Positions 1-54,652 of a stretch of 64,000 nucleotides of DNA are shown here, in pieces. Where the stretch lies: contig NC_092383.1 in NCBI RefSeq assembly GCF_030028105.1, forward strand, positions 97,859,604 to 97,923,603, read 5' to 3'. The stretch's first letter is position 1; the number at the start of each line of letters is the position of its first letter. Below the pieces are notes generated by a model that was not told the DNA's origin, did no database searches, and saw only the letters and a program-made list of their open reading frames with translations. This DNA comes from Mobula birostris (Eukaryota). The position numbers and the translations under genes are program-made.

Positions 1-98
1 CCGTGATCTACAGATAGAGGACATTGGTGATTATGAGGTGACTGTTACAGCAAGTTCAGGAGCACAGACTCAGAACAAAATGCGACTGAAGGTGTGCG
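1..98 (+). CDS. Gene A IgV exon 1, 3' part (CD2/SLAM-like V domain)
   Basis: Frame from base 2 reads RDLQIEDIGDYEVTVTASSGAQTQNKMRLKVC, then G|GTGAGT donor at 99 (phase 1). Exon end and following intron match gene B V1 (47761-48081). Confidence 0.85.
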
Positions 99-1956
99 GT
101 GAGTGAGATGCCGTGGAGGGGCCTGGGTTTCATCAGTTCCTGAAATGTCCCTAGTTAATGGGCGAGGGGTGATCCTGTGTGCTCCCCTGTTTTCTGAATC
201 CTACTGTCTGTCTGCATCCAGAGCTGGGCTCATGGTCCCAGTGTAGTGTGGCTGAGTCAGTGTGAGGCTGGAGGACACACTCACCACATCTGCGGAGACT
301 GGACCAGAGACTGAAGCATCGAACTGTCAATGGGGAGCCTTGTGACTCCGATGCTGGAGGGGATGAGCAGATTGAGAAGGGGGAACAGGAGAAAGGCCGA
401 TCTGGTGGGAGGGACGGATGATTGGATCCCACTGTATCCTGTCAAAGGCCTGGTCTGTCATGTTCAGGGATCCCATTTTCCCAGGATACTGCTTGTTAAT
501 TCCCTAGCCTGAGGTCTGAGCTCAGCAAGGTGTTTATTCCTCAGCCTTCGTGCTGTGCTGAGTGAGAGCCTGTGTATTCATTACACTGAATGTAGTGTCC
601 CAGTGAGTGACACAGTACACGGACACAACAGCACACTCACACACACCAGTATGGTTCCTGACTCACCCTAACAGTAATATAACATTCACAATTATCTCAC
701 TCAGCAACGTCTGTCTGAGAAATCTCCTCCACCCCAGGTTTAACGGGTTCCATTGGAGGGAGGAGAATGTCAGAACATGGGGAATAGAACATCACAGGAA
801 CAGCTCCTCAGCCTCATGATGTGCTGCCAAACTCATTGCTAATGGAATCCAGTTAAGCTAATCCCTTCTGACTGTTCGTGCTCCATATGCCTTTATTCTC
901 TACACATTCATGTGTGTATGTACAGCCTCTCAAAAATCTCTTTGGCCTTTGCCTCTATCACAACTCCCGGCAGCCCATTTCAGGCTCCCACCACTCTCTG
1001 TGTAAAGAAAAACTTGCCCTGCACATCTCCTTTGAATTCACCCCTGTCACTGTAAATGCACAATCTCTGGCATTAGCCACTTTTTAAATGATTTTTAAAA
1101 ATTTTATCGAGATACTGCGGGCAATAGGCCCTTCCGGGACTTTGAGACTCGCAGCCCAGCGATTCCCCCAATTGTAACCCAGCCTAATCACAGGGCAATT
1201 TATAATGACCAATTAACCATCCAATCGGTACATTATTGGACTGTGGGAGGAAACCAGAGAACGCAGAGGAATCCCACGTGGACATGGGGAGAATGCACAA
1301 ACTCCTTACGGGCAGTGGGAATTCAACCTGGTTCACTGGTATTGTAAAGCGTTGTGCTAACCACTAAGCTATCATGCCACCCCTGGGAAAAAATCCTGTC
1401 TGTCTATCATCTGTGTCCTTAAAAATGTTATAAACTTGTATCAGGTCAATCCTCAACCTCCGGCACTCAGAGGAAACAACCCAAATATGTCCAAACTTTT
1501 CTTCCAGCACATGCCCTGTAATCCGGGCACCAAGATGGTAAATGTCTGTTCCCTCTCCAAAGCCTTCACATTCTTCCTTTAATGGGGTGGCTGGAAATGA
1601 ATGCAATACTCCAGATGTGGCCTAATTAGAATTTTCAAAGATGTAGCATAACTTCTTGCCTTTTGAACTCAGTGCCTCGACTGATGAGGACAAGCATGTA
1701 AAATCCCTTCTTTTTTTTAATATAATTTTTATTAAATTTTCAAAATGAATACATGGAAAGATAATATCTACCCTACCTCCTCCCCTTAACCCTTCCCCCC
1801 TCCCCCCCGTATGTAGTCCTACCTAAAAAGAAAAGAAAGAGAAAAAAAGAACCGCCTGGGTATTGGGAGGTTTCCACATGCTCCATGGGATTTAAAATAA
1901 ATTTAGTATACTTATTCGTTAGTTTCCCCAAGGGACCAAGATCTTTATCGGAGCAA

Positions 1957-4900
1957 TTAAATATGCCATCCTACCTTTTGTAAATAAGGGCGCCAGATAT
2001 TCAAAAATGTTTCATATTTATCTCTTAAATTATAAGTAATTTTTTCGAGTGGAATAGAACTAGCCATTTAATTGTTCCAACGATTCATACTTAAATACGA
2101 ATCAAATTTCCAAGTCACAGCTATAGTCTTCTTAGCTACTGCCAATGCAATTTTTATAAATTTTTTCTGATACTTATTCAATTTAAGTTTTGGCTTTATC
2201 CCTTCAATATCACCTAGTAGAAATAATACAGGGTTATGTGGAAGTTGAGTTCCAGTAATTTGTTCCAATAAGACTCTTAAATTTATCCAAAAGGGTTGAA
2301 TTTTAAAACAAGACCAAGTAGAATGTAAAAAAGTACCAATTCCTTGATTACACTGAAAGCATTTATCGGATAGATTTGAATTTAATCTATTTATTTTTTG
2401 TGGTGTAATATTATTGGTGTAAAAAGTTATATTGTACTAATCTAAGTCGAACATTTATTGTATTTGTCATACTGTCAAGGCACAGTCTTGACCAATTTGT
2501 TTCATCAATATTGATATTCAGATCTGTTTCCCATTTTTGTTTTGACTTATGGATTCCTTGTTTAATTGTCTGTTTTTGAATCAAATTATACATACAAGAA
2601 ATAAATTTTTTAATTTTCCCTTTTTGAATTAAAATTTCAATTTCATTAGGCTTTGGCAAAAACATTGTTTGACCCAGCTTGCCTTTTAAATAAGCCCTTA
2701 ATTGAAGGTAACAAAAGAAAGTGTTATTTGATATTTTATATTTATCCTTTAGTTGTTCAAATGACATCAATATACCTCGTTCATAACAGTCTCCTATAAA
2801 TCTAATCCCTTTTTGGTACCAATTATATAAAAGTTGATTGTCCATTGTAAAAGGAATAAGCCTGTTTTGAAACAAAGGTCTCCTTGCTAATAAAGATTTC
2901 TGTATTTCATTATCAACATTTACCTTATTCCATAGATCAATCAAATGTATTAATATAGGAGATTCTTTCTTTTCCCATATCCATTTAGATTCCCATTTAT
3001 ATATAAAATCTTCAGGTCTATTTTCTCCTATCTTGTCTAATTCTATTTTAATCCATGCTGGTTTTCGATCATCGAAGAAAGATGCAATAAATCTAAGTTG
3101 ATTTGCTTTATAATAATTCTTAAAGTTTGGAAGTTGTAACCCTCCTAACTCAAATTTACATGTCAATTTTTCCAATGATATTCTTGACATCTTACCTTTC
3201 CAAAGAAATTTTCTCACACATTTATTTAACTCTTGGAAAAAAAATTCTGTGGCAATTGTATTGGTAATGTTTGAAACAAATATTGTAATCTGGGAAATAT
3301 ATTCATTTTTACAACATCGACTCTGCCTGCTAATGTTATTGGTAGTATCATCCATTTGTGAAGATCTTCTTGAATTTTTTTCAATAGTGGTACATAATTA
3401 AATTTATATAAATTCTTTACATCATTATCAAGTCTTATACCTAAATATACCATTTACTGGTCATCTAAATTGTGTTGCTGATCAACATTGGCTATAGTCT
3501 CCTTTAGTAAGAGGTAAAATTTCACTTTTATCCCAATTTATTTTATAACCTGATACCTTCCCATATTCCTCCAATCTAAAAGATAATTTATGTAGCGAAT
3601 GTTGTGGGTTTGTTAAGTAAATCAAAACACCATCAGCAAAAAGATTAATTTTATATTCTTCCTGATTAACTCTAAAACCCATAATATCTGGATCAATTCT
3701 GATTAGTTCTGCTAATGGCTCTATCACCAGTATAAATAAAGCAGGTGATAATGGACAACCTTGTCTAGTTGACCTTTTTAACTGGAATGGTGTTGAAATT
3801 TGAGAAGTTTGTCACTACTTTAGCATTAGGGTTAGTATTTAAAGTTTTAATCCAATTTATAAAAGATGTTCCTAACCCATATTTTTCTAATACTTTAAAT
3901 AAAAAAATCCCATTCCAATCTATCAAATGCTTTTTCTGCATCCAAGGCTACTACTATACTCTTCTCCTCCCTTTTTTGTGCCAAATGAATTATACTGAGT
4001 AACCGAGTTACATTATCTGCCAATTGTCTATTTTTAATAAATCCTGTTTGATCCATATGTATTAATTTTGGTAAATATTTAGATAATCTATTCGATAGAA
4101 TTTTTGCTATTATTTTATAATCCGTATTCAATAAAGAAATAGGCCTGTATGATGTTGGTTTCATTGGATCTCTGTCTTTTTTTGGCAATACTATTACAAT
4201 CGCTGTTGAAAAAGATTCTGGGAGTTTATGTATTTTTTCTGCTTGACGTATTAGCTCGATAAAGGGAGAAAATAATAAATCTTTAAACTTTTTATAAAAT
4301 TCAGGTGGAAAACCATCTTCTCCTGGAGATTTATTACTTTGGGGTGATCCTAAAGCTTCTTCAACCTCTTTTAATGTAAAAGGCGTATCTAATCCCTTCT
4401 GTTCTTCCGAATTCAATTTTGGAAGAGTTACTTGTGATAAAAACCTTTCTATCTCATTAACATCATTTTGTGATTCTGATTGATATAATTCAGAATAGAA
4501 ACTTTTAAAGGTTTCATTTATTTCAAAAGGTTTATAAGTTATTTTATTTGCACTTGTTCTAATTGCATTTATTGTTTTGGAAGCTTGTTCCGTTTTCAAC
4601 TGCCAAGCAAGAATTTTATGTGCTCTCTCACCTAACTCATAATACCTTTGCTTAGTTCTTATGATTGCTTTTTCCATTCTATATGTCTGAAGCGTATTAT
4701 ATTGTAACTTCTTATTGACAAGTTGCCTTCGTTTTTCTTCCAACATATATCTTTGAGATTCTTTTTCTAATTTTGTAATCTCTTTTTCTAATTGATCTAG
4801 TTCTGCCATATATTCTTTCTTGATTTTAGATGTATAGCTTATTATCTGGCCCCTCAAATATGCTTTCATTGCATCCCATAATATAAATTTATCATCCACT

Positions 4901-5730
4901 GAATGAAAATTTGTATCCAAAAAAAATTGGATCTGCTTTTTCATAAAATCACAAAAATCTTGACATTTTAATAATGTTGAGTTAAATCTCCATCTATAAG
5001 CCACTTCTTCCTTACCAGTCATTATTATTGTCATTAATAAAGGAGAATGATCTGACAATATTCTTGCTTTATATTCCATATTTTTCACTCTGTGTTGAAT
5101 ATGCATTGATAATAGGAAAAATTCTATCCTTGAGTAAGTTTTGTGTCTATGAGAATAGAACGAATAGTCTCTTTCTTTAGGATTGATTCTTCTCCATATA
5201 TCAATCAAATTTAAATCTTTCATCAATGATAGAGTTGGATTTACTACTTTCGATTTTGTAACAGCCTTAGTTGATCTATCTAAGACTGGGTCTAAGCAAA
5301 AATTAAAATCTCCTCCTATTAATATTTTTTCATGTGCATCAGCCAAATTCAAAAAAGCTTCTTGTATGAATTTTGCATCATTTTCATTTGGTGCATAAAT
5401 ATTCATAAAAGTCCATGATTCAGAGAAAAGTTGACAATATATAATCACATATCTCCCTGCAGAATCGGTTATTACATTTTGTATTCTAATTGGTAACATT
5501 TTATTGATCAAAATTGCTACTCTCCTCGCTTTTGAATTAAATGAAGCTGCAACAACACTACCCACCCAATCTCTCTTTAATTTCTGATGTTCTGTTTCTG
5601 TTAAATGCATTTCCTGTAAAAAGGCTTAATCTATCTTCATTTTCTTAATATGTGTTAAGATTCTTTTCCTTTTCACTGGTCCATTAAGCCCATTAAGATT
5701 AAAGCTCAAAAAATTCAATAAATTAGTCAT
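1957..5730 (-). pseudogene. L1 ORF2 (AP endonuclease + reverse transcriptase), broken by stops and frameshifts
   Basis: ATG at 5730 (MTNLLNFLSFNLNGLN), stop near 5628, ORF-track pieces 3895-5610, 3482-3727, 3226-3453, 2411-3355, 2068-2268; terminal TAA at 1957. Confidence 0.9.
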
Positions 5731-6246
5731 TATTTTTAACAAAGTTACTCCAATCTAAAACATTACTTAGCTTCTCAACTCTCATAGTTCCTTGGGGAAT
5801 CTCTTTGAACTTCACCAAGTTGCTATGTGTTTCCCTCCCAATAATCCAGGCAAAAAGAAAAAAAAGATAGATGAGATATAAAAAAAGAAAAAAACAAAAT
5901 ACCCCCCCACTAATGTTGTGAATGAAAGGATACACAACACTACCCCCCTCCATTTTGCGGGTTGTGGCTAAAGCCACGCTTGCACACATGATTAACGTAG
6001 CAATTGGTCAGTGCTTCTTCCAGCTCCCCCGTAACAAAAAAATTATATATAGATTTAAAAAAATTAATGTTACTATTCCCAACTAGTATTCCTCAAATTT
6101 TAACCTTACTTCCCCTCCCTCATATAATTCGTAATATATTTATATATTCATCCACCTTCAAAAATCCAACAAGTCCATTCTTTGACCCAGTCTTCTTCTT
6201 CAATCCATCTCGCTCCCCTGGTTTTGTTCTTGTATCTGGTGAATAT

Positions 6247-6516
6247 TCAGAGAATCTTGCACAAACTGCTCCGCTTTCTGGTAATCATCCGGTAAAAATC
6301 TTTTTTCTCCACCAGCCAAAAAATCTTCAAGGTTGCAGGATAACGCAATATAAATTGATAACCATGATCCCATAGGACTTTTTTCACTGGATTAAATTTC
6401 TTCCTTCTCTTCAAAAGTTCATAACTTATGTCAGGGTAGAAAAAAATTTTATTCCCTTGAACCATCAATGGCCCTTTTCTATTCTTGGCAGCTTGGGCAG
6501 CTGCCTGTGGAATCCT
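6247..6516 (-). pseudogene. L1 ORF1 C-terminal fragment
   Basis: QAAAQAAKNRKGPLMVQGNKIFFYPDISYELLKRRKKFNPVKKVL...RYPATLKI, typical of the L1 ORF1p C-terminal domain. Confidence 0.85.
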
Positions 6517-6652
6517 TTGCAAATGAAAGAGGAGGACCAATCAATTGAAATTGAGCGGGCACATAGAGCTCTAAGACCAAAACCACAAGATGACCAATAT
6601 CCACTAGCAATTTTAATAAAATTCTGAAGATTTCAAGACAAGGAAAGGATTC
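6517..6652 (+). mobile_element. Inverted 5' segment of the L1 (ORF1 RRM region)
   Basis: + strand reads LQMKEEDQSIEIERAHRALRPKPQDDQYPLAILIKF*RFQDKERI, the sequence that natively precedes the minus-strand QAAAQAAK; it abuts the right TSD. Confidence 0.9.
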
Positions 6653-7155
6653 TAAAATCCCTTCTTTACCCCCCAATCAACATGCAGCCACGTATCCCCA
6701 CCCATGTCTGCATCTGATCCATGTCCAATTGCATCTATTGGCACTCCCCTGCACCATCCACAACACCGACAGTCTGTTGGAGGCCTTTGGCCGACCTAGA
6801 GCCTATTCCCCACTCACTAAAATCGGGGTTGGTCTGACCCTGATCTCAGCTCTACTTTCCTGCCTGTTTCCACCCATCTCCCCAAATCCTCCCCAGATCA
6901 AAACTCTGACTGAACCTTGAATACAGTGACTCAGCCTCCACAACTCTCTGGGGAAGAAAATTCCATCGATTCCTGAACCTTAGAGAGGAGAAATCCTTCC
7001 TCATATCTGTCTGAAATTATGGTCCCTTATTCTGAAACTGTGCCCTTGTTTTAGATCATACAGGAGGGGGAAACATCCTCCCAACACCCACCTCACCCCG
7101 ATTCCTGCTCCAGTCACTGAACTCACCAGCTGACTGCCTCCTCTTGTCTCCTCAG

Positions 7156-7458
7156 AATGGATGGAGACCGTGAAAGGACTTTGGGGACAGTGGGTCTCCT
7201 TACCTGCTGGGATCACAGGCGGGCTGGACGTTTCTCAGGTGGTGTGGAGAAGAGACGGAACCACAATAGCAGAATATGCAAATGGAGTCATTTCTTACTT
7301 CGGTCCTGAGGAGTACAAGCGACGGATAACTCTTTATCCCGGGAACTTCAGTCTGAAAATCCGTGATCTACAGAGAGAGGATACTGGTGATTATGAGGTG
7401 ACTGTTACACCAAGTAGAGGAGGACAGATTCAGGCGGAAATGCGACTGGAGGTAAATG
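7156..7458 (+). CDS. Gene A IgV exon 2 (CD2/SLAM-like, no canonical Cys pair)
   Basis: Acceptor CTCTTGTCTCCTCAG, 303 nt, phase 1-1, donor GTGAGT. Translation has VVWRR (C-strand Trp), FSLKIRDLQREDTGDYEV (D-x-G-x-Y without Cys), RLEV. Confidence 0.9.
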
Positions 7459-8946
7459 GTGAGTGAAGCGTTGCAGAGGGCCCAGGTTTCTTTGATTCCT
7501 CTAACACTTCCAATTAATGGGTGAAGGCAGATCCTGTGTGTTCCCCTGTTTTCTAAACCCCACTGACTGTCCGTGTCCAGAGCTGGGCTCACGGTTCCAG
7601 TGTAGTGGGATTGAGTCAGTGTGAGTCTGGAGGACACACTCACCACATCCCCGGAGGCTGGACTAGAAACTATGAAGCATTGAACTTTCAATGGGGATCC
7701 TTGTGGCTCCAAGGCTGGAGGGGATGAACAGATGGTGTGGGGGATTGGGAGATGGGCGGATGGTGTGAGGGGGGCTGGTGGTTGGGCCAAACAGTCTATA
7801 TCTGTGGGTCAGTTCAACAGATCCCTCTGTATCCCCAGGTCAAAGTCCTGGTCTTTCATGTTCAGGGATCCCATTTTCCGAGGGCACTGCTTGTGACTTC
7901 TCCAGACTGAGGTCTGAGCTCAGCAAGGTGTTTATTCCTCAGCCTTCATGCTGTACTGTGCTGCGTGAGACCCTGTGTATTCATTACACTGAATATAATG
8001 TCCCAGTGAATGACACAGTACACGGACACAACAGCACACACACACAGCAATATGGTTCCTGACTCGCTCAAACAGTAATATCACATTCACAGTAATCTCA
8101 CTCAGCAACGTTTGTCTGAGAAATCTCCTCCACCCCAGGTTTAACGGGTCCCATTGGAGGGGGGAGAATGTCAGAACGTGGGGAATGGAACATCACAGGA
8201 ACAGCTCCTCAGCCTCATGATGTGCTGCCAAACTCATTGCTAATGGAACCCAGTTAAGCTAATCCCTTCTGACTGTTCGTGTTCCATATGCCTTTATTCT
8301 CTAGACATTCATGTGTGTATGTGACAGCCTCTCAAAAGTCTCTCTGGCCTTTGCCTCTACCACCACTCCAGACAGCCCATTTCAGGCTCCCACTCCCACT
8401 CTCTGTGTGAAGAAAAACTTGCCCTGCACATCTCCTTTGAATTTACCCCTGTCACTGTAAGTGCACCATCTCCGGTATTAGACACTTTTTATTTGATTTT
8501 TAAAAATTTTTTTGAGATACACCAGGGAATAGTCCCTTCTGGGATTTGAACCACACTGCCCAGCAATCCCCTGATTGTAACCCAGCCTAATCACAGGACA
8601 ATTTATAATGACTGATTAACCATCCAATCGGTACGTGTTTGGACTGTGGGGGAAAACCAGAGCACGCAGAGGAATCCCACGTGGACACGGGGAGAATGTA
8701 CAAACTCCTTATGGGCAGCGGGAATTCAACCTGGTTCACTGGTACTGTAAAGCGTTGTGCTAACCACTACGCTATAGTACAACCCTTGGGCGGAAAAATC
8801 CTGGCTTTACAGTACCAGTTGGAAGTGATTAGCTTCTACTTTAAACGCAAACAACAGGAATTCTGCAGACGCTGGAAATTCAAGCAACACACATCAAAGT
8901 TGCTGGTGAACGCAGCAGGCCAGGCAGCATCTCTAGGAAGAGGTGC

Positions 8947-8982
8947 AGTCGACGTTTCAGGCCGAGATCCTTCGTCAGGACT
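8947..8982 (-). ncRNA. Minimal type I hammerhead ribozyme motif
   Basis: Reverse complement: AGTC-CTGACGA-AGGATCTCGGCCT-GAAAC-GTC-GACT (stem I, core, stem II, palindromic ACGT stem III, GUC cleavage triplet). Confidence 0.75.
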
Positions 8983-9078
8983 AACTGAAGGAAGAGTGAG
9001 TAAGGGATTTGAAAGTTGGAGGGGGAGGGGGAGATCCAAAATCAACTTTCAAATCCCTTACTCACTCTTCCTTCAGTT

Positions 9079-9114
9079 AGTCCTGACGAAGGATCTCGGC
9101 CTGAAACGTCGACT
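9079..9114 (+). ncRNA. Minimal type I hammerhead ribozyme motif
   Basis: AGTC 9079-82, CTGACGA 9083-89, AGG...CCT stem II 9090-9102, GAAAC 9103-07, GTC 9108-10, GACT 9111-14. Confidence 0.75.
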
Positions 9115-9998
9115 GCACCTCTTCCTAGAGATGCTGCCTGGCCTGCTGCGTTCACCAGCAACTTTTATGTGTGTAGCTTCTACTTTATCTGTGTTCTTAA
9201 AAATGTTATAAACTTCTATCAGGTCTATCCTCAACCTCAGACACTCAGAGGAAACAACCCAAATCTGTCCAATTGTTTTTCTTCCAGCACCTGCCCTATA
9301 ATCTAAGCAGTATCATGGTAAATGTCTGTACCCTCTCCAAAGCCTCCCCATCCTACCTTTAATTGGGTGGCTGGAAGTGAATGCAATACCTTAGATGTGG
9401 CCAAACCAGAATTTAAAAGATGTAGCATAAGTTCCTGACTGTTGAACTCAGTGCCTCGACTGATGAGGACAAGCATGTAAAGTCCCTTCTTTACCCCCCT
9501 GATCAACATGCAGCCACGTTTCCCCACCCATGTCTGCATCTGATCCATGTCCAGTTGCACATATTGGCGCTCCCCTGCACCATCCACAACACCACCAATC
9601 TTTATCTCATCTACAAATGTGCTAACCGTCCCATCTATATTTCTGTCCTTCGGCTCCTGAATCCTAAAATCCATTCACTGAGATCAGGGCTGGTTTGACC
9701 TTGAACTCGGCTCCACTTTCCAGCTTGTTCCCACGCCTTAAGCGACTACTCCAGATCAGATCTCTCTCAGCCTTGAATACAGTGACTCCACTGCTCTCTG
9801 GGGGAAAAAAATGGGGAGATTCCTGACCCTTGGAGAGGAGACATCATTCCTCATCTCTGTCTGAAATGGTGCTTTATTCTGAAACTGTGCCTTGTTCTAC
9901 ACCCCACACAAAGATGAACACCTCCCCAGAACCCACCTCACTCTTGATTCCTCCAGTCACTGAGCTTACCTGCTGACTGCCTCCTCTTGTCTCCACAG

Positions 9999-10086
9999 AC
10001 TGGGTGGAGACTGCGAAAGGAGTTTAGGGACATATGGTCTCTTTGCCTGGTGGGATCTCAGCCAGACTGGATGTTCCTAAGGTGGT
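9999..10086 (+). pseudogene. Truncated IgV pseudo-exon in gene A
   Basis: Intact acceptor CTCCTCTTGTCTCCACAG; reads DWVETAKGV*GHMVSLPGGISARLDVPKVV (TAG at 10025-27). Homology then jumps to sequence resembling 13170-13280, implying a deletion. Confidence 0.8.
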
Positions 10087-10221
10087 TCTGGTCCCAATAG
10101 CTTCGTCTGCACCCCTTATGAAAACGTGCTTGGTGCTCTTATTGTTGCGGAGACCAGAACTGTGCATGGTGCTCCCAGTGAGGTCCAATCCAGGGATATG
10201 GAGACCAGAATTTGGGGGTGT

Positions 10222-10392
10222 GAGAGGTGATTAAAAAGGGGACTGACGGTAATGGGTGTGTGTGAGAGGTGATTGGAAAGGGGACTGATGGTAATGGGTG
10301 TGTGTGAGAGGTTTGGAAAGGGAACTGATGGTAATGAGCGTGTGTGAGAGGTTTGGGAAGGGAACTGACGGTAATGGGCGTGTGTGAGAGGC
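10222..10392 (+). repeat. ~42-bp minisatellite (GAGAGGTGATTGGAAAGGGGACTGATGGTAATGGGTGTGTGT)
   Basis: About 4 tandem copies; same unit at 13408-13612. Confidence 0.8.
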
Positions 10393-10577
10393 AGCAGGCA
10401 TCACCTTCCTGTCTCCAACCAGCTAACAGGAATCACCTGACACTGGTTCCCAATTCTTCACTTGCAGCCTATTTTAAACCAAGCTCTCATCCACAGCCCT
10501 TGTTCATTCATCATGCCCACCAGCCTCAACCAGTTGCTCCTGGCCTTCAGTTACCTTGTTGCCTTGTCGTCTAAGAC

Positions 10578-11135
10578 ATTTTAGAACATCAAACGGTACA
10601 GCGCAGGGACAGGCCCTTTGTCCCATAATGTTATGCCTAACTAACTAAATTAGTAATCAAATGCCCAACTAAACTAATCCCTTCTGCTTACACATTGCCC
10701 ATACGCTTCCAGTTCCAGCATGTTTGTGTGCCTATCTAAACGCCTCCACCACCACCATCACGGGCAGCACGTTCCAGGCACCCACCACCCACCCTCTGTG
10801 TAAAAATACTTGCTTCACATCTCCTTCCAACTTAACCCCTGTCATCTTAAATGCATGTACTCTGCTATTAAACATTCCAACCCTGTCTGTCTACTCTATC
10901 TATGCCTCGCATAATCTGATAAACCTCTATCAGATCTTCCCTTAGCTTCTGCCACTCCAGAGGAAATAACCTAAGTTTGTCCAACATTTTTGACCCTGGA
11001 GAAAAATACAGGCTAACTACTTTATCTGTGTCCTTCAAAATTTATAAACTTATGTCAGGTCTATCTTTAACCTCTGACACTCAGAGGAAACATTCCAAGT
11101 TTGTCCAGAAATTCCTTATAGCACGTGCTTTTTAA
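10578..11135 (-). mobile_element. Old CR1 3'-end fragment
   Basis: CR1-type tail (AGAACATCAAACGGTACAGCGCAGGGACAGGCCCTT) and RT C-terminal-like sequence as in other CR1 copies here. Confidence 0.6.
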
Positions 11136-11147
11136 TCTAGGCACTCA

Positions 11148-11389
11148 CCGCCAAGGTATGATCCCAGCACGTTAGGAGACTGTCTGTCCCGAAGCTCCTT
11201 TCACAGTCCCCATCCAGTCTGAGGAGACAAGAGGAGGCAGTCAGCAGGTGAGCTTAGAGACTGGAGCAGGAATCAGAGTGAGGTGGGTTCTGAATGAGGG
11301 CACAGTTTCAAAATAAGGGACCACCATTTCAGACAGAGATGATCCCCTCGCCAAAGGTCTGGAATCAATGCAATTTTCTCCCAAAAAGA
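11148..11389 (-). repeat. Inverted duplicate of 11878-12119 (gene A V3 acceptor region plus first 71 nt of exon)
   Basis: 242-bp reverse complement, no indels, 4 mismatches found by hand; 488-nt spacer. Confidence 0.95.
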
Positions 11390-12048
11390 AATGTCTGCTC
11401 CCTATCCAAAGCCTTCACATTCTTCATATAATGAAATGACTGGAACAGAAAGCAATACTTCAGATCTCCAAACTAGGGATTTTAAGGATACAGTATAACT
11501 TCCTAATTTATGAACTCATTGCCTCAACTAAGCCAGTACCTTATTTTACCACCCTATCAATATGCAGCCACATTTCCCTGCTATTGTCTGCATCTGAGCC
11601 ATATCCAATTGCACCTATTGGCACTTCTCTCTACAATGCACAACACCACCAATCTTTATCTCATCTATAAACATGCTAACCTTCCCGTCTACATTTCTAT
11701 CCAAAGAACAGTTAGAGGCCTTAAAGGCTCACAACCCTGCTTCCTGCTCACTGAGATCAGGGTTGGGCTGATCTTGATCTTAGCTCTGCTTTCCTGCCTG
11801 TTCCCACGCCTTCCCCAACTCCTTTCCACATCAAAACTCTGTCTCAGTCCTGAACACAGGGACTCAGCCTCCACAGCTCTTTTTGGGAGAAAATTGCATT
11901 GATTCCAGACCTTTGGCAAGGGGATCATCTCTGTCTGAAATGGTAGTCCCTTATTTTGAAACTGTGCCCTCATTCAGAACCCACCTCACTCTGATTCCTG
12001 CTCCAGTCTCTAAGCTCACCTGCTGACTGCCTCCTCTTGTCTCCTCAG

Positions 12049-12351
12049 ACTGGATGGGGACTGTGAAAGGAGCTTCGGGACAGACAGTCTCCTTACGTGC
12101 TGGGATCACACCTTGGCGGGATGTTTATCAGGTGGTGTGGAGATCAAACGGAACCAGAATAGCAGAATACACAAATGGCACCATTTCCTACTTCGGTACT
12201 GAGGAGTACAAGCAACGGATAACTCTTCATCCCAGGGACTTCAGTCTGGAAATCCGTGATCTACAGAGAGAGGATGCTGGTGATTATGAGGTGGAAATTG
12301 CTGTGGGTTCTGGAGCTGAACTTAAGGCGAGAGTGCGACTGGAAGTGAACG
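12049..12351 (+). CDS. Gene A IgV exon 3
   Basis: Acceptor CTCCTCTTGTCTCCTCAG, 303 nt, phase 1-1, donor GTGAGT; VVWRSNG...FSLEIRDLQREDAGDYEVEI...RVRLEV. Counterpart of gene B V3. Confidence 0.9.
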
Positions 12352-13612: not shown

Positions 13613-13622
13613 ACTCTATGAG

Positions 13623-20868: not shown

Positions 20869-21021
20869 ATCCTGCTGACAGATCGTCACACGCTGCTTGG
20901 ATCATTCCCCTCGTTGTGATACTCATTCTGTTACTTGTGTGTTGCTGTATATATAGAAAGAGGGAGTATCTTCGCTCACACTGGGACAAATGTATGGGAA
21001 AGAAATCCGGAACATCTGACG
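20869..21021 (+). CDS. Gene A transmembrane exon (TM1)
   Basis: Acceptor TCTTTTCTCCTCCCCAG, 153 nt, phase 1-1, donor GTAGGT. DPADRSSH-AAWIIPLVVILILLLVCCCIY-RKREYLRSHWDKCMGKKSGTSD: hydrophobic span plus basic stop-transfer. Confidence 0.85.
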
Positions 21022-21064: not shown

Positions 21065-21237
21065 ATTACAGATCGTCACACACTGGTTGTATAATTCCCA
21101 TTGTGATACTCAGTTTGATCATTGCGTGTGCCGTACTGTATATAATCCGGGGTCATCTTTGCTCTGTAAACTCTGGCATCATTGTCACTCATGCAAGTCC
21201 ACCCCGATGGGAAAGGCATCAAGAAGGATACATGTGA
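21065..21237 (+). CDS. Gene A second, paralogous TM exon (TM2) ending in a stop
   Basis: CCAG|AT phase-1 acceptor; DYRSSHTGCIIPIVILSLIIACAVLYIIRGHLCSVNSGIIVTHASPPRWERHQEGYM*. Nucleotide similarity to TM1 (GATCGTCACAC...TTGTGATACTCA). Confidence 0.6.
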
Positions 21238-23995: not shown

Positions 23996-24074
23996 AGGCA
24001 GTGCATTGGAGGGATGTATGTATCAATCAGGAAAGGCACTGATGGGGCCTCCTCACCTCTGCTCTCTGTCTCAG

Positions 24075-24259
24075 AGATCCGATAGTGACACGGCCTTTGA
24101 ACAGTCGACCTGGTAGAGAACACAGCTCATAGACACCCACTCCATCGGAACAGTGTGTGCTAGATACTGCCTCACCTTCCCAGGGCTTCCATCGTTTCCA
24201 ACTGTTGCTTCAGATTTTCACTCTCTGCTCGAAATATGTAAATATACAATAACATTAAA
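24075..24259 (+). CDS. Candidate terminal exon of gene A (codes E-I-R-stop, then 3' UTR)
   Basis: Strong acceptor CCTCCTCACCTCTGCTCTCTGTCTCAG; phase-1 join gives GAG ATC CGA TAG (stop 24083-85); ATTAAA at 24254-59 followed by a GT-rich stretch. Confidence 0.4.
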
Positions 24260-28369: not shown

Positions 28370-28740
28370 GAGAGAAGGTGGGAGAAGAGGTGAACACTGG
28401 TGATAGAGGATTCACTGGTTAAAGGGACAGAAGAGATTCTGTGGATGAAAACATGTCTAACAGATGTTATGTTGCCTTCCAGGTGCCAGGGTCAGAGACA
28501 TCACTGAGTCCGTTGCATTCTTAACAGGAAAGGTGAGGAGCCAGAAGTCAGGGTCCACATCAGTACCAGTCACAGAGGCAGAAAGGGTGATGAACTCCTG
28601 TAAAGTGCATTCAGGGAGTGAAGTGCTACGTTAAAGGACTCTTGCCACATGCTGGTGAGGCCAGAACTAGGAGGACAATGTGGCTAAAGAGATGGTGCAA
28701 CAGGAGGAATTCAGATACTTGGATCATTGGATTCTCTTCC
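28370..28740 (+). mobile_element. CR1 ORF1 esterase-domain fragment
   Basis: GTGATAGAGGATTCACTGGTTAAAGGGACAGAA...TGTTGCCTTCCAGGTGCCAGGGTCAGAGAC (GDSL-like and CCLPGARVRD motifs). Confidence 0.65.
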
Positions 28741-39741: not shown

Positions 39742-39793
39742 ATGTGGATGGTCTCGCCCCTGCTCTGTGTTGTCGCCTGGGTCGCCCGTGTGG
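39742..39793 (+). CDS. Gene B leader (signal peptide) exon
   Basis: ATG TGG ATG...GTG G|GTAAGG; MWMVSPLLCVVAWVARV, phase 1. Joins 47761 in frame to give ...VARVAETGDSPTTV, a plausible cleavage region. Confidence 0.75.
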
Positions 39794-41190: not shown

Positions 41191-41199
41191 TGATTGTTC

Positions 41200-46930: not shown

Positions 46931-47070
46931 TCATGAAGGGTCTTAGCCCAAAACAATGACGATTCACTCTTTTTCCATAGATACTGCCTGGCCTGTTGAG
47001 TTCCTCCAGCATTTTGTGAATGTTGCTTGGATTTCCAGCATCTGCAGATTTTCTCAGCTTTACCTTTCCC
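46930..47070 (+). mobile_element. Penelope terminal-repeat fragment
   Basis: CATGAAGGGTCTTAGCCCAAAAC...CTGCCTGGCCTGTTGAGTTCCTCCAGCA...CCAGCATCTGCAGA. Confidence 0.6.
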
Positions 47071-47760: not shown

Positions 47761-48081
47761 CTGAGACTGGGGATTCCCCGACCACTGTGAACGGAACTTG
47801 GGGACAGTCGGTCTCCTTACCTCCTGGGATCCCAATCGGACCGGACGTTGCTGAGCTTGTGTGGAGACGGTTGTCACCCAGGGTGAAGATAGTGACATAT
47901 TCAAAGAAGATCAGTGACTATTACGGTTCTGAGGAGTACAAGCGACGGATAACTTTTCATCCCGGGAACTTCAGTCTGGAAATCCGTGATCTGCAGAGAG
48001 AGGACACTGGTGATTACGAGGTGACTGTTACAGCAAGTTCAGGAGCACAGGCTCAGAACAAAATGCGACTGGAGGTGTACG
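47761..48081 (+). CDS. Gene B IgV exon 1 (N-terminal domain)
   Basis: Acceptor CTCCTCTTGTCTCCTCAG, 321 nt, phase 1-1, donor GTGAGT; (A)ETGDSPTTVNGTWGQSVSLPPG...LVWRR...DLQREDTGDYEV...RLEVY. Confidence 0.9.
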
Positions 48082-50221
48082 GTGAGTGAGACGCCTCGGA
48101 GGGGCCCGGGTTTCATCAGTTCCTGAAGCACCCCAATTAATGATCCTGTGTGTTCCCCTGTTTACTGAACCCACTGACTGCCGGTGTCCAGAGCTGGGCT
48201 CACGGTCCTAGTGTAGTGAGGCTGAGTCAGTGTGAGTCTGGAGGACACACTCACCACATCCCCGGAGACTGAACCAGAGGCTGTGAAGCATCAAACTGTC
48301 AATGGGGAACCTCGTGACTCTGAGGCTGGAGGAGCTGAGCAGATGGGGAAGGGGGAACAGGAGATAGGCTGATCTGGTGGGAGGGACTGGTCGATGGGCT
48401 GAACAGTCTATATCTGTGGGTCAGTTAAACAGATCCCTCTGTATCCCCAGGTCAAAGGCCTGGTCTGTCATGTTCAGGGATCCCATTTTCAGAAGGCACT
48501 GCTTGTTAATTGCCCAGACTGAGGTCTGAGCTCAGCAAGGTGTTTATTCCTCAGCCTTCATGCTGTGCTGTGCTGAGTGAGACCCTGTGTGTTCATTACA
48601 CTGAATATAGTGTCCCAGTGAGTGACACAGTACACGGACACAACAGCACACTCACACACAGCAATATGGTTCCTGACTCACTCTAACAGTAATATCACAT
48701 TCACAATTACCTCACTCAGCAACGTTTGTCTGAGAAATCTCCTCCACCCCAGGTTTAACGGGTTCCATAGGAGGGAGGAGAATATCAGAACGTGGGGAAT
48801 AGAACGTCACAGGAACAGCTCCTCAGCTCATGATGTGCTGCCAAACTCATTGCTAATGGAATCCAGTTAAGCTAATCCCTTCTGACTGTTCGTGTTCCAT
48901 ATGCCTTTATTCTCTACACATTCATGCGTGTACGTACAGCCTCTCAGAAATCTCTCTGGCCTTTGCCTCTGCCACCACTCCAGACAGCCCATTTCAGGCT
49001 CCCACCCCCACTCTCTGTGTGAAGAAAAACTTGTCCCGCACATCTCCTTTGAATTTACCCCTGTCACTGTAAATGCACCATCTCCGGTATTAGACACTTT
49101 TTATTTGATTTTTTAAAATTTTTTTGAGATACACCAGGGAATAGTCCCTTCCGGGATTTGAACTACACTGCCCAGCAATCCCCTGATTGTAACCCAGCCT
49201 AATCACAGGACAATTTATAATGACTGATTAACCATCCAATCAGTACGTGTTTGGACTGTGGGAGGAAACCAGAGCACGCAGAGGAATCCCACGTGGACAC
49301 GGGGAGAATGTACAAACTCCTTACGGGCAGTGGGAATTCAACCTGGTTCACTGGTACTGTAAAGTGTTGTGCTAACCACTACGCTATAGTGCCACCCCTG
49401 GGAAAAAATCCTGTCTGTCTATCATCTGTGTCTTAAAAATGTTATAAACTTGTATCAGGTCAATCCTCAACCTCCGGCACTGTGAGGAAACAACCAACAT
49501 TTGTCCAAACTTTTCCTCCAGCACATGCCCTGTAATCCGGGCACAATGATGGTAAATGTCTGTTCCCTCTCCAAAACCTCCACATTCTTCCTTTAATGGG
49601 GTGGCTGGAAATGAATGCAATACTCCAGATGTGGCCTAATTGGAATTTTTAAAGATGTAGCATAACTTCTTGCCTTTTGAACTCAGTGCCTCGACTGATG
49701 AGGACAAGCATGTAAAATCCCTTCTTTACCCCCCGATCAACATGCAGCCACGTTTCCCCACCCATGTCTGCATCTGATCCATGTCCAATTGCATCTATTG
49801 GCACTCCTCTGCACCATCCACAACACCAACAATCTGTTGGAGGCCTTTGGCCCACCTGGAGCCTATTCCCCACTTACTGAAATCAGGGTTGGTCTGACCT
49901 TGATCTCAGCTCTACTTTCCTGCCTGTTTCCACCCTCTCCCCAAATCCTCTCCAGATCAAAACTCTGTCTGAACCTTGAATACAGTGACTCAGCCTCCAC
50001 AACTCTCTGGGGAAGAAAATTCCATCGATTCCTGAACCTTAGAGAGGAGAAATCCTTCCTCATATCTGTCTGAAATTATACTCCCTTATTCTGAAACTGT
50101 GCCCTCATTTTAGATCATACAGGAGGGGGAAACGTCCTCCCAACACCCACCTCACCCCGATTCCTGCTCCAGTCACTGAACTCACCGGCTGACGGCTGAC
50201 TGCTTCCTCTTGTCTCCTCAG

Positions 50222-50524
50222 AGTGGATGGGGACCGTGACAAGAGCTTGGGGACAGTTGGTCTCCCTACCTGCTGGGATCACACGCGGGCTGGACGTTTC
50301 TCAGGTGGTGTGGAGAAGAGATGGAACCACAATAGCAGAATATGCAAATGGAGTCATTTCTTACTTCGGTCCTGAGGAGTACAAGCGACGGATAACTCTT
50401 CATCTCGGGAACTTCAGTCTGGAAATTCGTGATCTACAGATAAAGGACACTGGTTATTACGAGGTGACTGTTACAGCAAGTTCAGGAACACAGACTCAGA
50501 ACAAAATGCGACTGGAGGTGTACG
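50222..50524 (+). CDS. Gene B IgV exon 2
   Basis: Acceptor CTTCCTCTTGTCTCCTCAG, 303 nt, phase 1-1, donor GTGAGT; central part nearly identical to gene A V2. Confidence 0.9.
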
Positions 50525-52280
50525 GTGAGTGAAGCGTTGCAGAGGGGCCCAGGTTTCTTTGGTTCCTCTAACACTTCCAATTACTGGCTGAGGGCAGATC
50601 CTCTGTGTTCCCCTGTTTACTGAACCCCACTGACTGCCCGTGTCCAGAGCTGGGCTCACGGTCCCAGTGTAGTGGGGTTGAGACAGTGTGAGTCTGGAGG
50701 ACACACTCACCACATCCCCTGAGACTGGACCAGAGACTGTGAAGCATCGAACTGTCAATGGGGAACCTCGTGACTCTGAGGCTGGAGGAGATGAGCAGAT
50801 GGTGTGGGGGAACAGGAGATAGGCCAATCTGGTGGGAGGGGCTGATGACTGGGTCGAACAGTCTATATCTGTGGGTCTTTTCAACAGATCCCTCCGTATT
50901 CCCAGGTCAAAGGCCTGGTCTTTCATGTTCAGGGATCCCATTTTCAGAAGGCACTGCTTGTTAATTCCCCAGACTGAGGTCTGAGCTCAGCAAAGTGTTT
51001 ATTCCTCAGCCTTCATGCTGTGCTGTGCTGAGTGAGACCTTGTGTGTTCATTACACTGAATATAGTGTCCCAGTGAGTGACACTGTACACGGACACAACA
51101 GCACACTCACACACAGCAATATGGTTCCTGACTCACTCTAACAGTAATATCACATTCACAATAATCTCACTCAGCAACGTTTGTCTGAGAAATCTCCTCC
51201 ACCCCAGGTTTAACGGGTTCCATTGGAGGGGGGAGAATGTCAGAACATGGGGAATAGAACGTCACAGGAACAGCTCCTCAGCTCATGATGTGCTGCCAAA
51301 CTCATTGCTAATGGAACCCAGTTAAGCTAATCCCTTCTGACTGTTCGTGCTCCATATGCCTTTATTCTCTACACATTCATGTGTGTATGTACAGCCTCTC
51401 AAAAATCCCTCTGGCCTTTGCCTCTATCACAACTCCCGGCAGCCCATTTCAGGCTCCCACTCCCACTCTCTGTGTAAAGAAAAACTTGCCCTGCACATCT
51501 CCTTTGAATTATACCATCTCTGTAAATGCACCATCTCCGGTGTTAGACAATTATATTTGTTTTTTTATATTTTATTGAGATACACCAGGGAATAGTCCCT
51601 TCCAGGATTTGAACCACACTGCCCAGCAATCCCCCGATTGTAACCCAGCCTAATCACAGGACAATTTATAATAACCAATTAACCATCCAATCGGTACGTG
51701 TTTGTTGTAGGAGGAAACCAGAGCACGCAGAGGAATCCCACGTGGACATGGGGAGAATGTACAAACTCCTTATGGGCAGCGGGAATTCAACCTGGTTCAC
51801 TGGTATTGTAAAGCGTTGTGCTAACCACTACGCTATCATGCAACCCTTGGGGAAAGAATACTGGCTGTCTACTTTATCTGTGTTCTTATAAATGTTAAAC
51901 ACTTGTATCAGGTCTATCCTCAACCTCCAACACTGTGAGGAAACAACCAAAATTATCCAACTTTTTCTTCCAGCACATGCCCTGTAGTCCAGGCACCCAG
52001 ATGGTAAATGTCTGTTCCCTCTCTAAAGCCTCCACGTTCTTCCTTTAACGGAGTGGCTGGAAATGAATGCAATATTCCAGATGTCGCTGAATCAGAGTTT
52101 TTAAAGGTGTAGCATAACTTCTGGACTTTTGAACTCACTGCACCGACTGATGAGGACAAGCATGTAAAATCCCTTCTTTACCCCCCAATCAACATGCAGC
52201 CACGTTTCCCCACCCACGTCTGCATCTGATCCATCCAATTGCATCTATTCTCTGTACCCTCCACAACACCACCAATCTTT

Positions 52281-53530
52281 GTAGAACATAGAACATAGAA
52301 TAGTACAGCACAGTACAGGCCCTTCGGCCCACAATGTTGTGCTGACCATCAAACCCTGCCTCCCATATAAGCCCCCAACTTAAATTCCTCCATATACCTG
52401 TCTAGTAGTCTCTTAAACTTCACTAGTGTATCTGCCTCCACCACTGACTCAGACAGTGCATTCCACACACCAACCACTCTCTGAGTAAAAGACCTTCCTC
52501 TAATATCCCCCTTGAACTTCCCACCCCTTACCTTAAAGCCATGTCCTCTTGTATTGAGCAGTGGTGCCCTGGGGAAGAGGCGCTGGCTATCCACTCTTAT
52601 CTATTCCTCTTATTATCTTGTACACCTCTATCATATCTCCTCTCATCCTCCTCCTCTCCAAAGTGTAAAGCCCTAGCTCCCTTAATCTCTGATCATAATG
52701 CATACTTTCTAAACCAGGCAGCATCCTGGTAAATCTCCTCTGTACCCTTTCCAATGCTTCCACATTCTTCCTATAGTGAGGTGACCAGAACTGGACACAG
52801 TACTCCAAGTGTGGCCTAACCAGAATTTATAGAGTTGCATCTTTACATCGCGACTCTTAAACTCTATCCCTCGACTTATGAAAGCTAACACCCCATAAGC
52901 CTTCTTAACTACCCTATCCACCTGTGAGGCAACTTACAGGGATCTGTGGACATGTACCCCGTGATCCCTCTGCTCCTCCACACTACCAAGTATCCTGCCA
53001 TTTACTTTGTACTCTGCCTTGGAATTTGTCCTTCCAAAGTGTACCACCTCACATTTCTCCGGGTTGAACTCCATCTGCCACTTCCCAGCCCACTTCTGCA
53101 TCCTATCAATGTCTCTCTGCAATCTTTGACAATCCTCTACACTATCTACAACACCATCAACCTTTGTGTCGTCTGCAAACTTGCCAACCCACCCGTCTAC
53201 CCCCACATCCAAGTCGTTAATAAAAATCACGAAAAGTAGAGGTCCCAGAACAGATCCTTGTGGGACACCACTAGTCACAATCCTCCAATCTGAATGTACT
53301 CCCTCCACCACCACCCCTCTGCCTTCTGCAGGCAAGCCAATTCTGAATCCACCTGGCCAAACTTCCCTGGATCCCATGCCTTCTGACTTTCTGAATAAGC
53401 CTACCGTGTGGAACCTTGTCAAATGCCTTACTATAATCCATATAGATCACATCCACTGCGCTAACCTCATCTATGTGCCTGGTCACCTCCTCAAAGAACT
53501 CTATCAGGCTTGTTAGACACGATCTGCTCT
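52281..53530 (-). mobile_element. Young CR1 3' fragment in the gene B V2-V3 intron
   Basis: (AGAACAT)n tail, [20 protein letters not shown]. The paralogous intron near 9600 has the empty site ACCAATCTTTATCTCATCTACA. Confidence 0.9.
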
Positions 53531-54349
53531 CATCTACAGGCTTGTTAGACATGATCTGCCCTTATCTCATCTACAAACATCCTAACCCTCCCATCTGTAT
53601 TTCTATCCAAGGAACAGTGAGTGGCCTTTCACCCACCTCGAGCTGACTCCCCACTCACTGAATTCGGGGTTGGTCTGACCCTGATCTCAGCTCCACTTCC
53701 CTGCCTCTTTCAAAGGTTCAGAGTTTCAATTTAATGACAGAGAAATGTATACAATATACATCCTGAAATGCTTTTTCTTTGCAAAACATCCACAAAAACA
53801 GAGAAGTGCCCCAAAGAATGAACGACAGTTAAACGTGAGAACCGCTAAGATCCCCCCCCTAGCTCCCCCTTCCAGCGTGTAAGCGGTGGCGAGCAACAAT
53901 CCCCCTATCCCCGACTCCTCTTCAGACTAAAATGCAAGAGAGAACCAGTAAATAAAACCCAAGCTGGGTTCACAGAAAACAAGTCATTACCAAGATGTAG
54001 TGATATCTAATTCCCAGTAAACACTCTCAATTTAACCCATGCAATTCCAGGCATACAGATGACAGGTAATGATGTTTAAAGATATCACTACCCTCAGAAT
54101 TATATCCCTCTCAGCTTTGAATACAGTGACTCAGCACCTCTCTGGGGGAGAAAATTCCTCTGGTTCCTGATCCTTGGAGAGGGGAAATTGTTCCTCATCT
54201 CCGTCTGAAATTATGGTCTCTTATTCTAAAACTGTACCCTTGTTCTAGATCCCACAAGAGGGGGAAACACCCTCCCAACACCCCCCTCACTCTGATTCCT
54301 GCTCCAGTCACTGAGCTCACCTGCTGACTGCCTCCTCTTTTCTCCTCAG

Positions 54350-54652
54350 AATGGATGGGAACTGTGAAAGGAGCTCGGGGAGAGACAGTCTCCTTAACTG
54401 CTGGGATCACAGTCGGGCCGGGCGTTTCTGAGGTGGTGTGGAGGTCAGATGGAACCAAAAAAGCCAAATACAGAAGTGGAAACATTTCCTACTTCGGTCC
54501 TGAGGAGTACAAGCGACGGATAACTCTTCATCCCAGGAAATTCAGTCTGGAAATCCGTAATCTACAGATAGAGGATGCCGGTGATTATGAGGTGGAAATT
54601 GCCGTGGGTTCTGGAGCTGAATCTAAGGCGAGAGTGCGACTGGAGGTGTACG
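54350..54652 (+). CDS. Gene B IgV exon 3
   Basis: Acceptor CTCCTCTTTTCTCCTCAG, 303 nt, phase 1-1, donor GTGAGT; EDAGDYEVEIAVGSGAESKARVRLEVY. Confidence 0.9.

Follow-up and report, generated by a model that had tools for sequence, protein, structure and literature searches.

The V-type immunoglobulin exons in this 64,000-nt stretch of Mobula birostris DNA (the window) raise the question of what kind of surface protein is built from V domains alone, and to which receptor family such a protein belongs. In mammals, SLAM/CD2 receptors play a central part in controlling how lymphocytes and NK cells communicate. The first-pass annotation had read the locus as a cluster of CD2/SLAM-like receptors with a leader, three V domains and a transmembrane (TM) segment. 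RefSeq names for the family are automated only ('Ly-9-like', 'unc-89-like', 'uncharacterized'), and model P0158 from the window is called "unc-89-like".

On the + strand, five V exons were located complete and a sixth by its final 98 nt. They belong to two colinear genes, tandem paralogues of which the window covers one and a half. Gene 1 is represented by the end of V1, V2, V3, a TM exon and a tail exon, and is matched by the window-encoded model P0160. Gene 2 is represented by the leader, V1, V2 and V3, and is matched by RefSeq model P0158; the exons for the TM and tail of this gene fall outside the window, past position 64000. Six intact phase 1-1 V exons had originally been counted; the phase and the V1-V2-V3 order of the two genes held, but the count is five intact exons and one cut by the window edge (1-98). 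The complete V exons, delimited by tblastn and profile search, are 303-321 nt long with borders AG|...G|GTGAGT in phase 1-1, and all five are open with intact splice sites. Each V domain is a single phase 1-1 exon, and the domains abut without a linker. The B- and F-strand positions were without Cys in every V exon (VSLPAG..., D[TA]GDYEV), in agreement with the earlier reading, and the V domains of orthologues contained 0-1 Cys each, never at the B or F positions.

In gene 1, the 3' end of the V1 exon, cut by the window start (1..98, + strand), matched V profile positions 70-100 and P0160 residues ~91-122, with the donor G|GTGAGT after position 98. The V2 exon (7156..7458, + strand, 303 nt, phase 1-1, no Cys) aligned to P0160 residues 119-223 with 97% identity; all mismatches fall where the alignment extends upstream of the exon. 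Two pieces of V debris were found. The first is a decayed 5' fragment with an in-frame stop (9995..10087, + strand), detected by tblastn and homologous to the sequence ahead of V2 and V3 and running into them; the second, detected by tblastn, profile search and inverted blastn matches, is the 5' end of a V exon in inverted orientation, interrupted by stops (11160..11231, - strand). The V3 exon (12049..12351, + strand) is intact, with 303 nt in phase 1-1 and 96% identity to the V3 of P0156. It is left out of the M. birostris model P0160 and present in P0156, the M. hypostoma orthologue.

TM exon A (20869..21021, + strand, phase 1-1, DPADRSSHAAWIIPLVVILILLLVCCCIYRKREYLRSHWDKCMGKKSGTSD) was 100% identical to P0160 residues 224-275 and encodes an uncharged segment with a juxtamembrane CCC. 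A duplicate TM-like exon B, open to a stop, is a candidate exon 43 nt downstream of exon A (21065..21237, + strand). The last coding exon of gene 1 (24075..24132, + strand, stop TAG at 24130-24132) is conserved; acceptors at 24075 or 24077 give EIR or DPIVTRPLNSRPGREHSS before the stop. Both kinds of ending occur among the models, as EIR in P0156 and as …GGEHSS in P0001, P0155 and P0157. Model P0160 uses an alternative last exon (28482..28634, + strand, 100% identity to its residues 275-324), and because it also skips V3, the dominant isoform of gene 1 is uncertain. V exons may be skipped in frame, as this single gene model without V3 suggests.

The gene 2 leader exon (39742..39793, + strand, MWMVSPLLCVVAWVARV) starts at an ATG, ends in a phase-1 donor G|GTAAGG and is identical to the N-terminus of P0158. 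With TM exon A, it places both of the flanking exons that had been proposed. The V1 exon (47761..48081, + strand, 321 nt, phase 1-1) was assigned by tblastn and gene-model match. The V2 exon (50222..50524, + strand) was 100% identical to P0158, is transcribed with RNA depth confined to the exon, and is spliced to the V3 exon (54350..54652, + strand). RNA contigs contained this V2-V3 joint (50523/4 to 54349/50, GT..AG) in 4/4 runs, at depths of 383, 529, 165 and 20, and no RNA depth was recorded in the unique intron sequence next to either exon. V3 is also transcribed and is spliced onward in the contigs, to a TM exon outside the window; past position 54652 the loose end of the contigs translates as DPDLRTSYNG, with which the P0158 TM segment begins, so V3 joins the TM exon directly. 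The splicing seen in RNA is this V2 to V3 to TM stretch of gene 2, while gene 1 and the V1 to V2 junction are known from exons and gene models. Mapping of RNA, which had been proposed as a check on the leader-V-V-V-TM architecture, joined V exons to each other with no C2 between V2, V3 and TM of gene 2, and the same build was present in gene models of four ray species. The full-length AF2 model contained three Ig domains (pLDDT 80-90) with continuous strands between domains.

No C2 exon was found in the window by tblastn with C2-bearing relatives, including Mobula birostris P0165, or with an 89-sequence C2 profile run against all 2041 stop-to-stop segments (best E 0.07). These searches and the direct RNA joints bear out the claim that no C2-type exon lies between the V exons or between V3 and TM. 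The window genes thus have no membrane-proximal C2-set domain of the CD2/SLAM consensus. A segment at 55736-55861 (QTAIELTCHVTT) was considered as a C2 relic (E 0.2) and rejected, being unsupported by the closest C2 probes and absent from transcripts.

Similarity of the V domain to CD2/SLAM V domains, without the B-F disulfide, is supported by sequence profiles and predicted structure. The V profile matched CD2 (rat), CD84, CD48 and SLAMF6 (NTB-A) in the PDB over the full domain with E-values of 1e-6 to 1e-4. A single-domain AF2 model (pLDDT 91) gave CD84, CD48, 2B4 and CD2 as its top Foldseek matches (TM-score 0.79-0.85), and Pfam returned V-set with weak Receptor_2B4 and SLAM matches. The single-domain model was used because the whole-protein fold search was uninformative for family; whole-protein searches returned generic multi-Ig proteins only (pIgR, contactins, titin, CEACAM, PSG, Ly-9) with TM-scores below 0.35.

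The relatives of the window genes agree with the CD2/SLAM assignment first proposed, since they include proteins with C2 domains and ITSMs. In the family census, paralogues were V-C2-TM or V-TM with 1-2 ITSMs, and the 99.8-Mb record that contains the window also carries two SLAM-like models with ITSMs (P0018 and P0171). The number of V domains among paralogues ranged from 2 to 4, with P0155 as the 4-V member. Paralogues that share the leader and TM are still V-C2-V or V-C2-V-C2; one of the latter, P0002 of Hemitrygon, has the TM and tail of the V-V-V proteins.

Proteins of V-V-V-TM build whose V1, V2 and V3 are orthologous were found in Mobula and in the dasyatids Hemitrygon and Hypanus, and were not found in sawfish, skates or sharks among the species present in databases, on whose representation the Myliobatiformes limit depends. 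In the domain tree, V1, V2 and V3 each formed a clade mixing Mobula with Hemitrygon and Hypanus, and no sawfish, skate or shark domains fell within the V2 or V3 clades. Since each of the three domains is orthologous between Mobula and dasyatids, the V-V-V build has been kept since the ancestor they share. The tree, the 4-V paralogue and the decayed V debris in gene 1 all favor the original suggestion of a lineage-specific family formed by V-exon duplication. The V-V-V subfamily would be derived, inside Myliobatiformes, from SLAM-like genes of V-C2(-V-C2) build in the same cluster, probably through duplication of V exons and loss of C2 exons.

The tails of the V-V-V proteins are short and contained no ITIM or ITSM, and the TM is uncharged, so that these features and the CCC are as first described. 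The ITSM (TxYxxV/I) count was 0 in all V-V-V-TM proteins of the census, as against 1-2 in the same-chromosome paralogues. The ITSM is present in 6/9 human SLAMF proteins and missing from SLAMF2, 8 and 9 and from CD58. Tyrosine-motif signalling would therefore seem impossible for the V-V-V proteins, and the uncharged TM offers no site for the charged pairing used by ITAM adaptors. Most likely they serve at the cell surface as ligands or adhesion partners that do not themselves signal, a role for which CD48, CD58 and SLAMF8/9 provide the comparison, and their probable partners would be the SLAM-like receptors with ITSMs encoded on the same chromosome.

We consider it likely overall that the two tandem genes encode type I membrane glycoproteins of Myliobatiformes origin, each with a signal peptide, three disulfide-less CD2/SLAM-type V domains, no C2, an uncharged TM and a short tail, and that these serve as non-signalling ligands or adhesion partners. 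We judge it unlikely that they are instead signalling receptors in the manner of SLAMF8/9, with the conserved tail segment (juxtamembrane and GKKSGT[SP]D), palmitoylated Cys residues or a lateral partner as the route, rather than passive ligands. The TM-exon tail segment is strongly conserved between Mobula and dasyatids, with S369, G376 and K377 invariant and an invariant GKK motif inside the conserved GKKSGT[SP] stretch; some close paralogues are named 'SLAM family member 8-like' by NCBI; and the tails of human SLAMF8 and SLAMF9 are ~30 residues long without ITSMs (PMC4718992). However, the ray tail contains no known docking motif, the TM carries no charge, and the tail may just as well be conserved for trafficking or for anchoring to the cytoskeleton.

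Variability among the V domains was higher on the GFCC'C'' strands (entropy 1.07) than on ABED (0.53), and this concentration on the GFCC'C'' faces is consistent with rapid diversification. The dN/dS between the V exons of the two genes was 0.85-0.92, with exon conservation no better than that of introns, a pattern compatible with relaxed constraint and with diversifying selection alike. The genes could accordingly be decaying duplicates under relaxed constraint, transcribed but dispensable by-products of a fast-turnover cluster with an accidental all-V build. A paralogous-exon dN/dS of about 0.9, exon identity not above intron identity, the V debris (9995-10087, 11160-11231), the skipping of V3 in P0160 and the varying V number (2 to 4) point in that direction. 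Decay is nevertheless quite improbable: all five complete V exons retain an open frame and intact splice sites, the core residues are invariant, V1, V2 and V3 are orthologous between Mobula and dasyatids, and RNA word depth was in the hundreds in three runs.

Returning to the ligand reading, we propose tentatively, as a possibility that is on balance doubtful, that V-V-V is a novelty of stingrays and mantas: a ligand or decoy of the SLAM family, rigid and multivalent with three V domains, diversifying by co-evolution with pathogens or paralogues, in which a homophilic V-C2 receptor became a non-signalling counter-structure. Two-V and secreted isoforms would be added by exon skipping and by an acceptor site inside the TM exon. 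If true, the ray V-V-V decoy would have converged in function on the multi-N decoys that rodents have in PSG and CEACAM.

Nothing relevant came from literature searches, whether on the SLAM/CD2 family of cartilaginous fish or of teleosts or on Mobula immune genes, and no transcript-derived (Logan) proteins of the ray V-V-V family were of useful length. A well-described orthologous family with this architecture would have spoken against novelty; automated RefSeq models were found, and no paper. The all-V SLAM/CD2-like build is an undescribed stingray/manta variant of the SLAM/CD2 family, known from gene models only. The names 'Ly-9-like', given to the stingray orthologues, and 'unc-89-like' are misnomers, and the locus corrects these misleading database entries. 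A large SLAM-like cluster appears to be present in the oldest jawed-vertebrate lineage, and one ray order would have rebuilt the V-C2 ectodomain as V-V-V and dropped the signalling motifs. This provides a natural experiment on the purpose of the C2 domain, on the derivation of ligand-only members from receptors and on the repeated evolution of multi-V decoys (compare rodent PSGs).

Among known systems, rodent PSGs are N1-N2-N3-A, with disulfide-less V-type N domains serially duplicated in rodents (PMC10440875). Membership of the CEACAM/PSG lineage instead of CD2/SLAM is scarcely credible: rat CEACAM3, mouse PSG22 and mouse CEACAM5 were among the top whole-protein fold matches and one sawfish relative is named 'CEACAM5-like' by NCBI, but CEACAM1 profile matches were partial (positions 55-100) and to non-N domains where CD2, CD84 and CD48 matched over the full domain, CEACAM1 ranked 26th in the single-domain fold search behind CD84, CD48, 2B4, CD2 and NTB-A, ITSMs on paralogues are a SLAM hallmark, and the ray V is not closest to an N domain, nor does the window contain A/B-type IgC exons. 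Rodent PSGs carry from three up to eight N domains with a single A, and CEACAM11-14 have two N only, all fast-evolving and lineage-specific (PMC10440875). They offer a precedent for serial duplication of a disulfide-less IgV-like exon, although they are secreted, placental members of the CEA family, whereas the ray proteins are membrane-anchored with V domains nearer CD2/SLAM.

Uncharacterised models with 5-17 V-like domains matching the V profile occur in loaches and cyprinids (P0010, P0014, P0017), a frog (P0059) and a Logan transcript (P0047, five V domains and a TM with a short tail). These are much more distant from the ray proteins, at about 10-20 bits per domain, and are probably independent expansions; some of the models resemble fused adjacent genes. 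Ly-9 (SLAMF3, CD229) is V-C2-V-C2 with ITSMs and, like the ray proteins, owes more than two Ig domains to internal duplication. The window genes differ from it as V-V-V-TM, with three V, no C2 and no ITSM, and the ray V2 and V3 fall in separate clades. The SLAM-family consensus ectodomain is IgV-IgC2 (PMC4718992), in contrast to ray proteins without any C2 or ITSM tail. SLAMF8 and SLAMF9 share the short ITSM-less tail but keep the V-C2 ectodomain. With SLAMF1-9, CD2, CD48 and CD58 as a whole, the ray genes have in common an N-terminal V without the B-F disulfide, phase 1 exons, a probable multigene cluster locus and paralogues with C2 and ITSMs, and it is these proteins that gave the best sequence and fold matches.

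Six V-type exons were found on the + strand when the whole window was searched with a V-exon query and a five-exon profile. Gene 1 has the last 98 nt of V1 (1-98, cut by the window start), a complete V2 (7156-7458) and a complete, intact V3 (12049-12351). Gene 2 has complete V1 (47761-48081), V2 (50222-50524) and V3 (54350-54652) exons. The complete exons are 303-321 nt long, and each has a polypyrimidine-AG before its start and G|GTGAGT at its end; all are therefore phase 1-1. As the first-pass annotation had stated, cysteine is missing from both the B-strand position (VSLPAG-type) and the F-strand position (D-x-G-D-Y-E-V) in every complete V exon. DNA self-comparison aligned 1-13077 with 47984-55769 as colinear units at 82-92% identity, and the window contains no N runs. 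The two colinear genes and the phase described in that annotation hold, but its six intact exons are five complete ones and a sixth cut by the edge. Two decayed V-exon pieces, one with a stop (9995-10087) and one inverted (11160-11231), lie between gene 1 V2 and V3.

Contigs from four RNA-type runs of Mobula birostris were placed on 50100-54760, the gene 2 V2-V3 region. V2 and V3 both had RNA depth, and the unique intron flanking them had none. The joint 50523->54349 (GT..AG, cut +1) occurred in 4/4 runs, with depths of 383, 529, 165 and 20; one run was flagged 'probably DNA', yet gave the same intron-free pattern. The RNA letters continuing past 54652, ATCCAGATCTCAGAACATCATACAATGGT, read in phase 1 as DPDLRTSYNG, the first residues of the TM segment of P0158, the RefSeq model of gene 2. 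Gene 2 V2, V3 and TM are thus joined directly in RNA. Within the V2-V3 intron, word depth in the RNA runs rose to ~2,000-33,000 over a repeat (52284-53843) that has many internal rearranged joints, which suggests a transposable element present in many copies and highly transcribed.

Used as tblastn queries on the window, four C2-bearing relatives gave only V, TM and tail matches; C2-domain queries from the nearest V-C2-V paralogues, M. birostris P0165 among them, gave only noise (E > 1). An unfiltered C2 profile of 89 family domains, applied to all 2041 stop-to-stop segments, yielded nothing better than E 0.07, a match on the wrong strand. No C2 exon is hidden in the window; these searches and the RNA joint V2->V3->TM bear out the earlier claim that none separates the V exons. 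An exon-like piece with AG and GT flanks, QTAIELTCHVTTVSFT, is located at 55736-55861 (+), 1.1 kb 3' of gene 2 V3. Its weak resemblance to the B strand of a family C2 domain is not significant (E 0.2), and no transcript contains it; either a C2 relic or a chance likeness may explain it.

The genes were identified by searching 1.84 billion representative proteins with a profile and then by a word-indexed search. P0158, a model of 404 aa that carries the annotation 'muscle M-line assembly protein unc-89-like [Mobula birostris]', corresponds to gene 2, with matches to the leader (39742-39793) and to all three V exons. For the TM and tail part of P0158 the window has no counterpart, which places those gene 2 exons past position 64000; the gene extends over 34,976 nt. 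The gene 1 model, P0160, is encoded in the window and comprises V1, V2, a TM exon (20869-21021) and a last exon (28482-28634). It leaves out the intact V3, just upstream of which is an inverted V-exon fragment (11148-12119 region); the M. hypostoma orthologue, P0156, contains V3, with 96% identity to that of gene 1. A C-terminus conserved among relatives (…GGEHSS) was located at 24077-24132.

Several side features were seen around the gene 1 TM and tail. The last coding exon has frame-switching tandem acceptors 2 nt apart (cAG|AG|, 24073-24077), one giving a tail of ...SGTSD-EIR and a stop, as in P0156, and the other ...SGTSD-DPIVTRPLNSRPGREHSS and a stop, as in the related models P0001, P0155 and P0157. 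The TM exon contains an internal acceptor at ~20948-20960, tatatatAG|AAAGAGGG, use of which would skip the TM helix; the shifted frame then reads ERGSIF.HTGTNVWERNP.HLT, with which the M. birostris paralogue model P0162 ends, and a secreted isoform could result. A second, duplicated TM-like exon (21065-21237), open to a stop, lies 43 nt 3' of the first. The intron between TM and tail exons holds a 2.7-kb G-rich minisatellite (21275-23995; ~94 copies of the 30-nt unit GGGGAGTAGGGAGGAGGAGGGGAGGGTCT) with a GC skew of +0.87 on the coding strand.

Each retrieved relative was assigned an architecture from its V and C2 profile matches, its hydrophobicity and a motif scan. Mobula, Hemitrygon, Hypanus, Pristis, skates and sharks commonly had the canonical V-C2-TM and V-TM forms, with one or two ITSMs; V-C2-V-TM (P0161, P0163, P0165, P0167, P0005) and V-C2-V-C2-TM (P0002) forms were also present. 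Four species had V-V-V-TM proteins: M. birostris, M. hypostoma, Hemitrygon akajei and Hypanus sabinus. M. hypostoma had a V-V-V-V-TM form (P0155) as well. The motif scan found no ITSM or ITIM in any V-V-V protein, and their TM segments are uncharged, both as originally proposed from the window. The data show that these are type I proteins, that they are expressed, and that they have three V domains of the CD2/SLAM type and lack a C2 domain, a tyrosine motif and a charged TM residue.

Such proteins would be unable to recruit SAP, EAT-2 or SHP via ITSMs or ITIMs, and ITAM adaptors, which pair through charged residues, would find no site in the uncharged TM. CD48 is the ligand of 2B4, and CD58 that of CD2. 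The most economical role would likewise be that of ligand or adhesion partner of the ITSM-bearing paralogues; homophilic adhesion would be an alternative. The strongest rival is signalling through a conserved tail, as in SLAMF8 and SLAMF9: the TM-exon-encoded segment is conserved, with an invariant GKK in a GKKSGT[SP] stretch that is itself conserved. The juxtamembrane CCC noted in the first-pass annotation is present in gene 1, where it may be palmitoylated, but gene 2 has no such triplet.

A second rival is that the V-V-V genes are dispensable, decaying duplicates. Between genes 1 and 2, dN/dS was 0.85 for V2 and 0.92 for V3, and exon identity (90.5% and 87.4%, respectively) was not above that of the flanking intron (91-94%). 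Column entropy in the GFCC'C'' strands (1.07) was double that in ABED (0.53), and the distal loops had the highest value (1.32). Diversifying selection on the binding face and partial relaxation could each account for this pattern. The third rival, a CEACAM affinity, is unlikely: CEACAM1 matches of the exon profile to PDB sequences covered only the C-terminal half, in non-N domains, and CEACAM1 ranked 26th in the single-domain fold search.

The same profile gave full-domain alignments to rat CD2 d1, SLAMF5/CD84, CD48, SLAMF6, CD58 and 2B4 (E 8e-7 to 5e-3). Pfam matches to V-set and I-set passed the threshold; those to Receptor_2B4 and SLAM did not. The AF2 model of a single V domain (pLDDT 91, pTM 0.80) was closest to CD84, CD48, 2B4, CD2 and NTB-A (TM 0.78-0.85), and profile and fold agree with the proposed CD2/SLAM-like V domain. 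The full-length model has three Ig domains (pLDDT ~80-90) with continuous G-to-A strands between them; a TM helix follows, and the tail is disordered.

A phylogeny of 102 V domains placed V1 of the V-V-V proteins with the first V of myliobatiform V-C2-V(-C2) genes (support 100/96). V2 domains formed one clade and V3 domains another (99/91), each with Mobula and dasyatid sequences and neither with any sawfish, skate or shark domain; gene 1 V3 paired with its M. hypostoma orthologue beside dasyatid V3s. The V1-V2-V3 build is therefore older than the Myliobatidae/Dasyatidae split, and on present sampling it is confined to Myliobatiformes, which favours the lineage-specific V duplication first suggested. 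TM and tail types are common to P0002, P0165 and the V-V-V proteins, and P0165 also has the gene 2 leader, which points to assembly by exon duplication and loss inside one cluster. Further RefSeq paralogues are located on the chromosome record that contains the window.

The first-pass observation is confirmed overall and its interpretation supported: the V-V-V proteins are real and expressed, and form an all-V variant of the SLAM/CD2 family that is specific to one order. A literature search found no paper on cartilaginous-fish SLAM/CD2 genes or on this subfamily, which is known only as mislabelled automated models and whose function we infer. The same V profile matched uncharacterised models with 6-17 V-like stretches in loaches and cyprinids, V x5-C2 in the frog Mixophyes fleayi and V x5-TM in one Logan transcript, the latter two also uncharacterised (poly-V proteins P0010, P0014, P0017, P0047, P0059); serial V duplication in CD2/SLAM-like genes may thus be recurrent across vertebrates. 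The SLAMF consensus is IgV-IgC2-TM-ITSM, from which SLAMF2 departs by its GPI anchor, SLAMF3 by its duplicated V-C2, and SLAMF8 and SLAMF9 by a short tail (PMC4718992); unlike the ray proteins, none is all-V. The best architectural precedent, though in another family, is provided by the secreted rodent PSGs, with 3-8 IgV-like N domains together with a single A domain, and the secreted CEACAM11-14, with two N domains only (PMC10440875).
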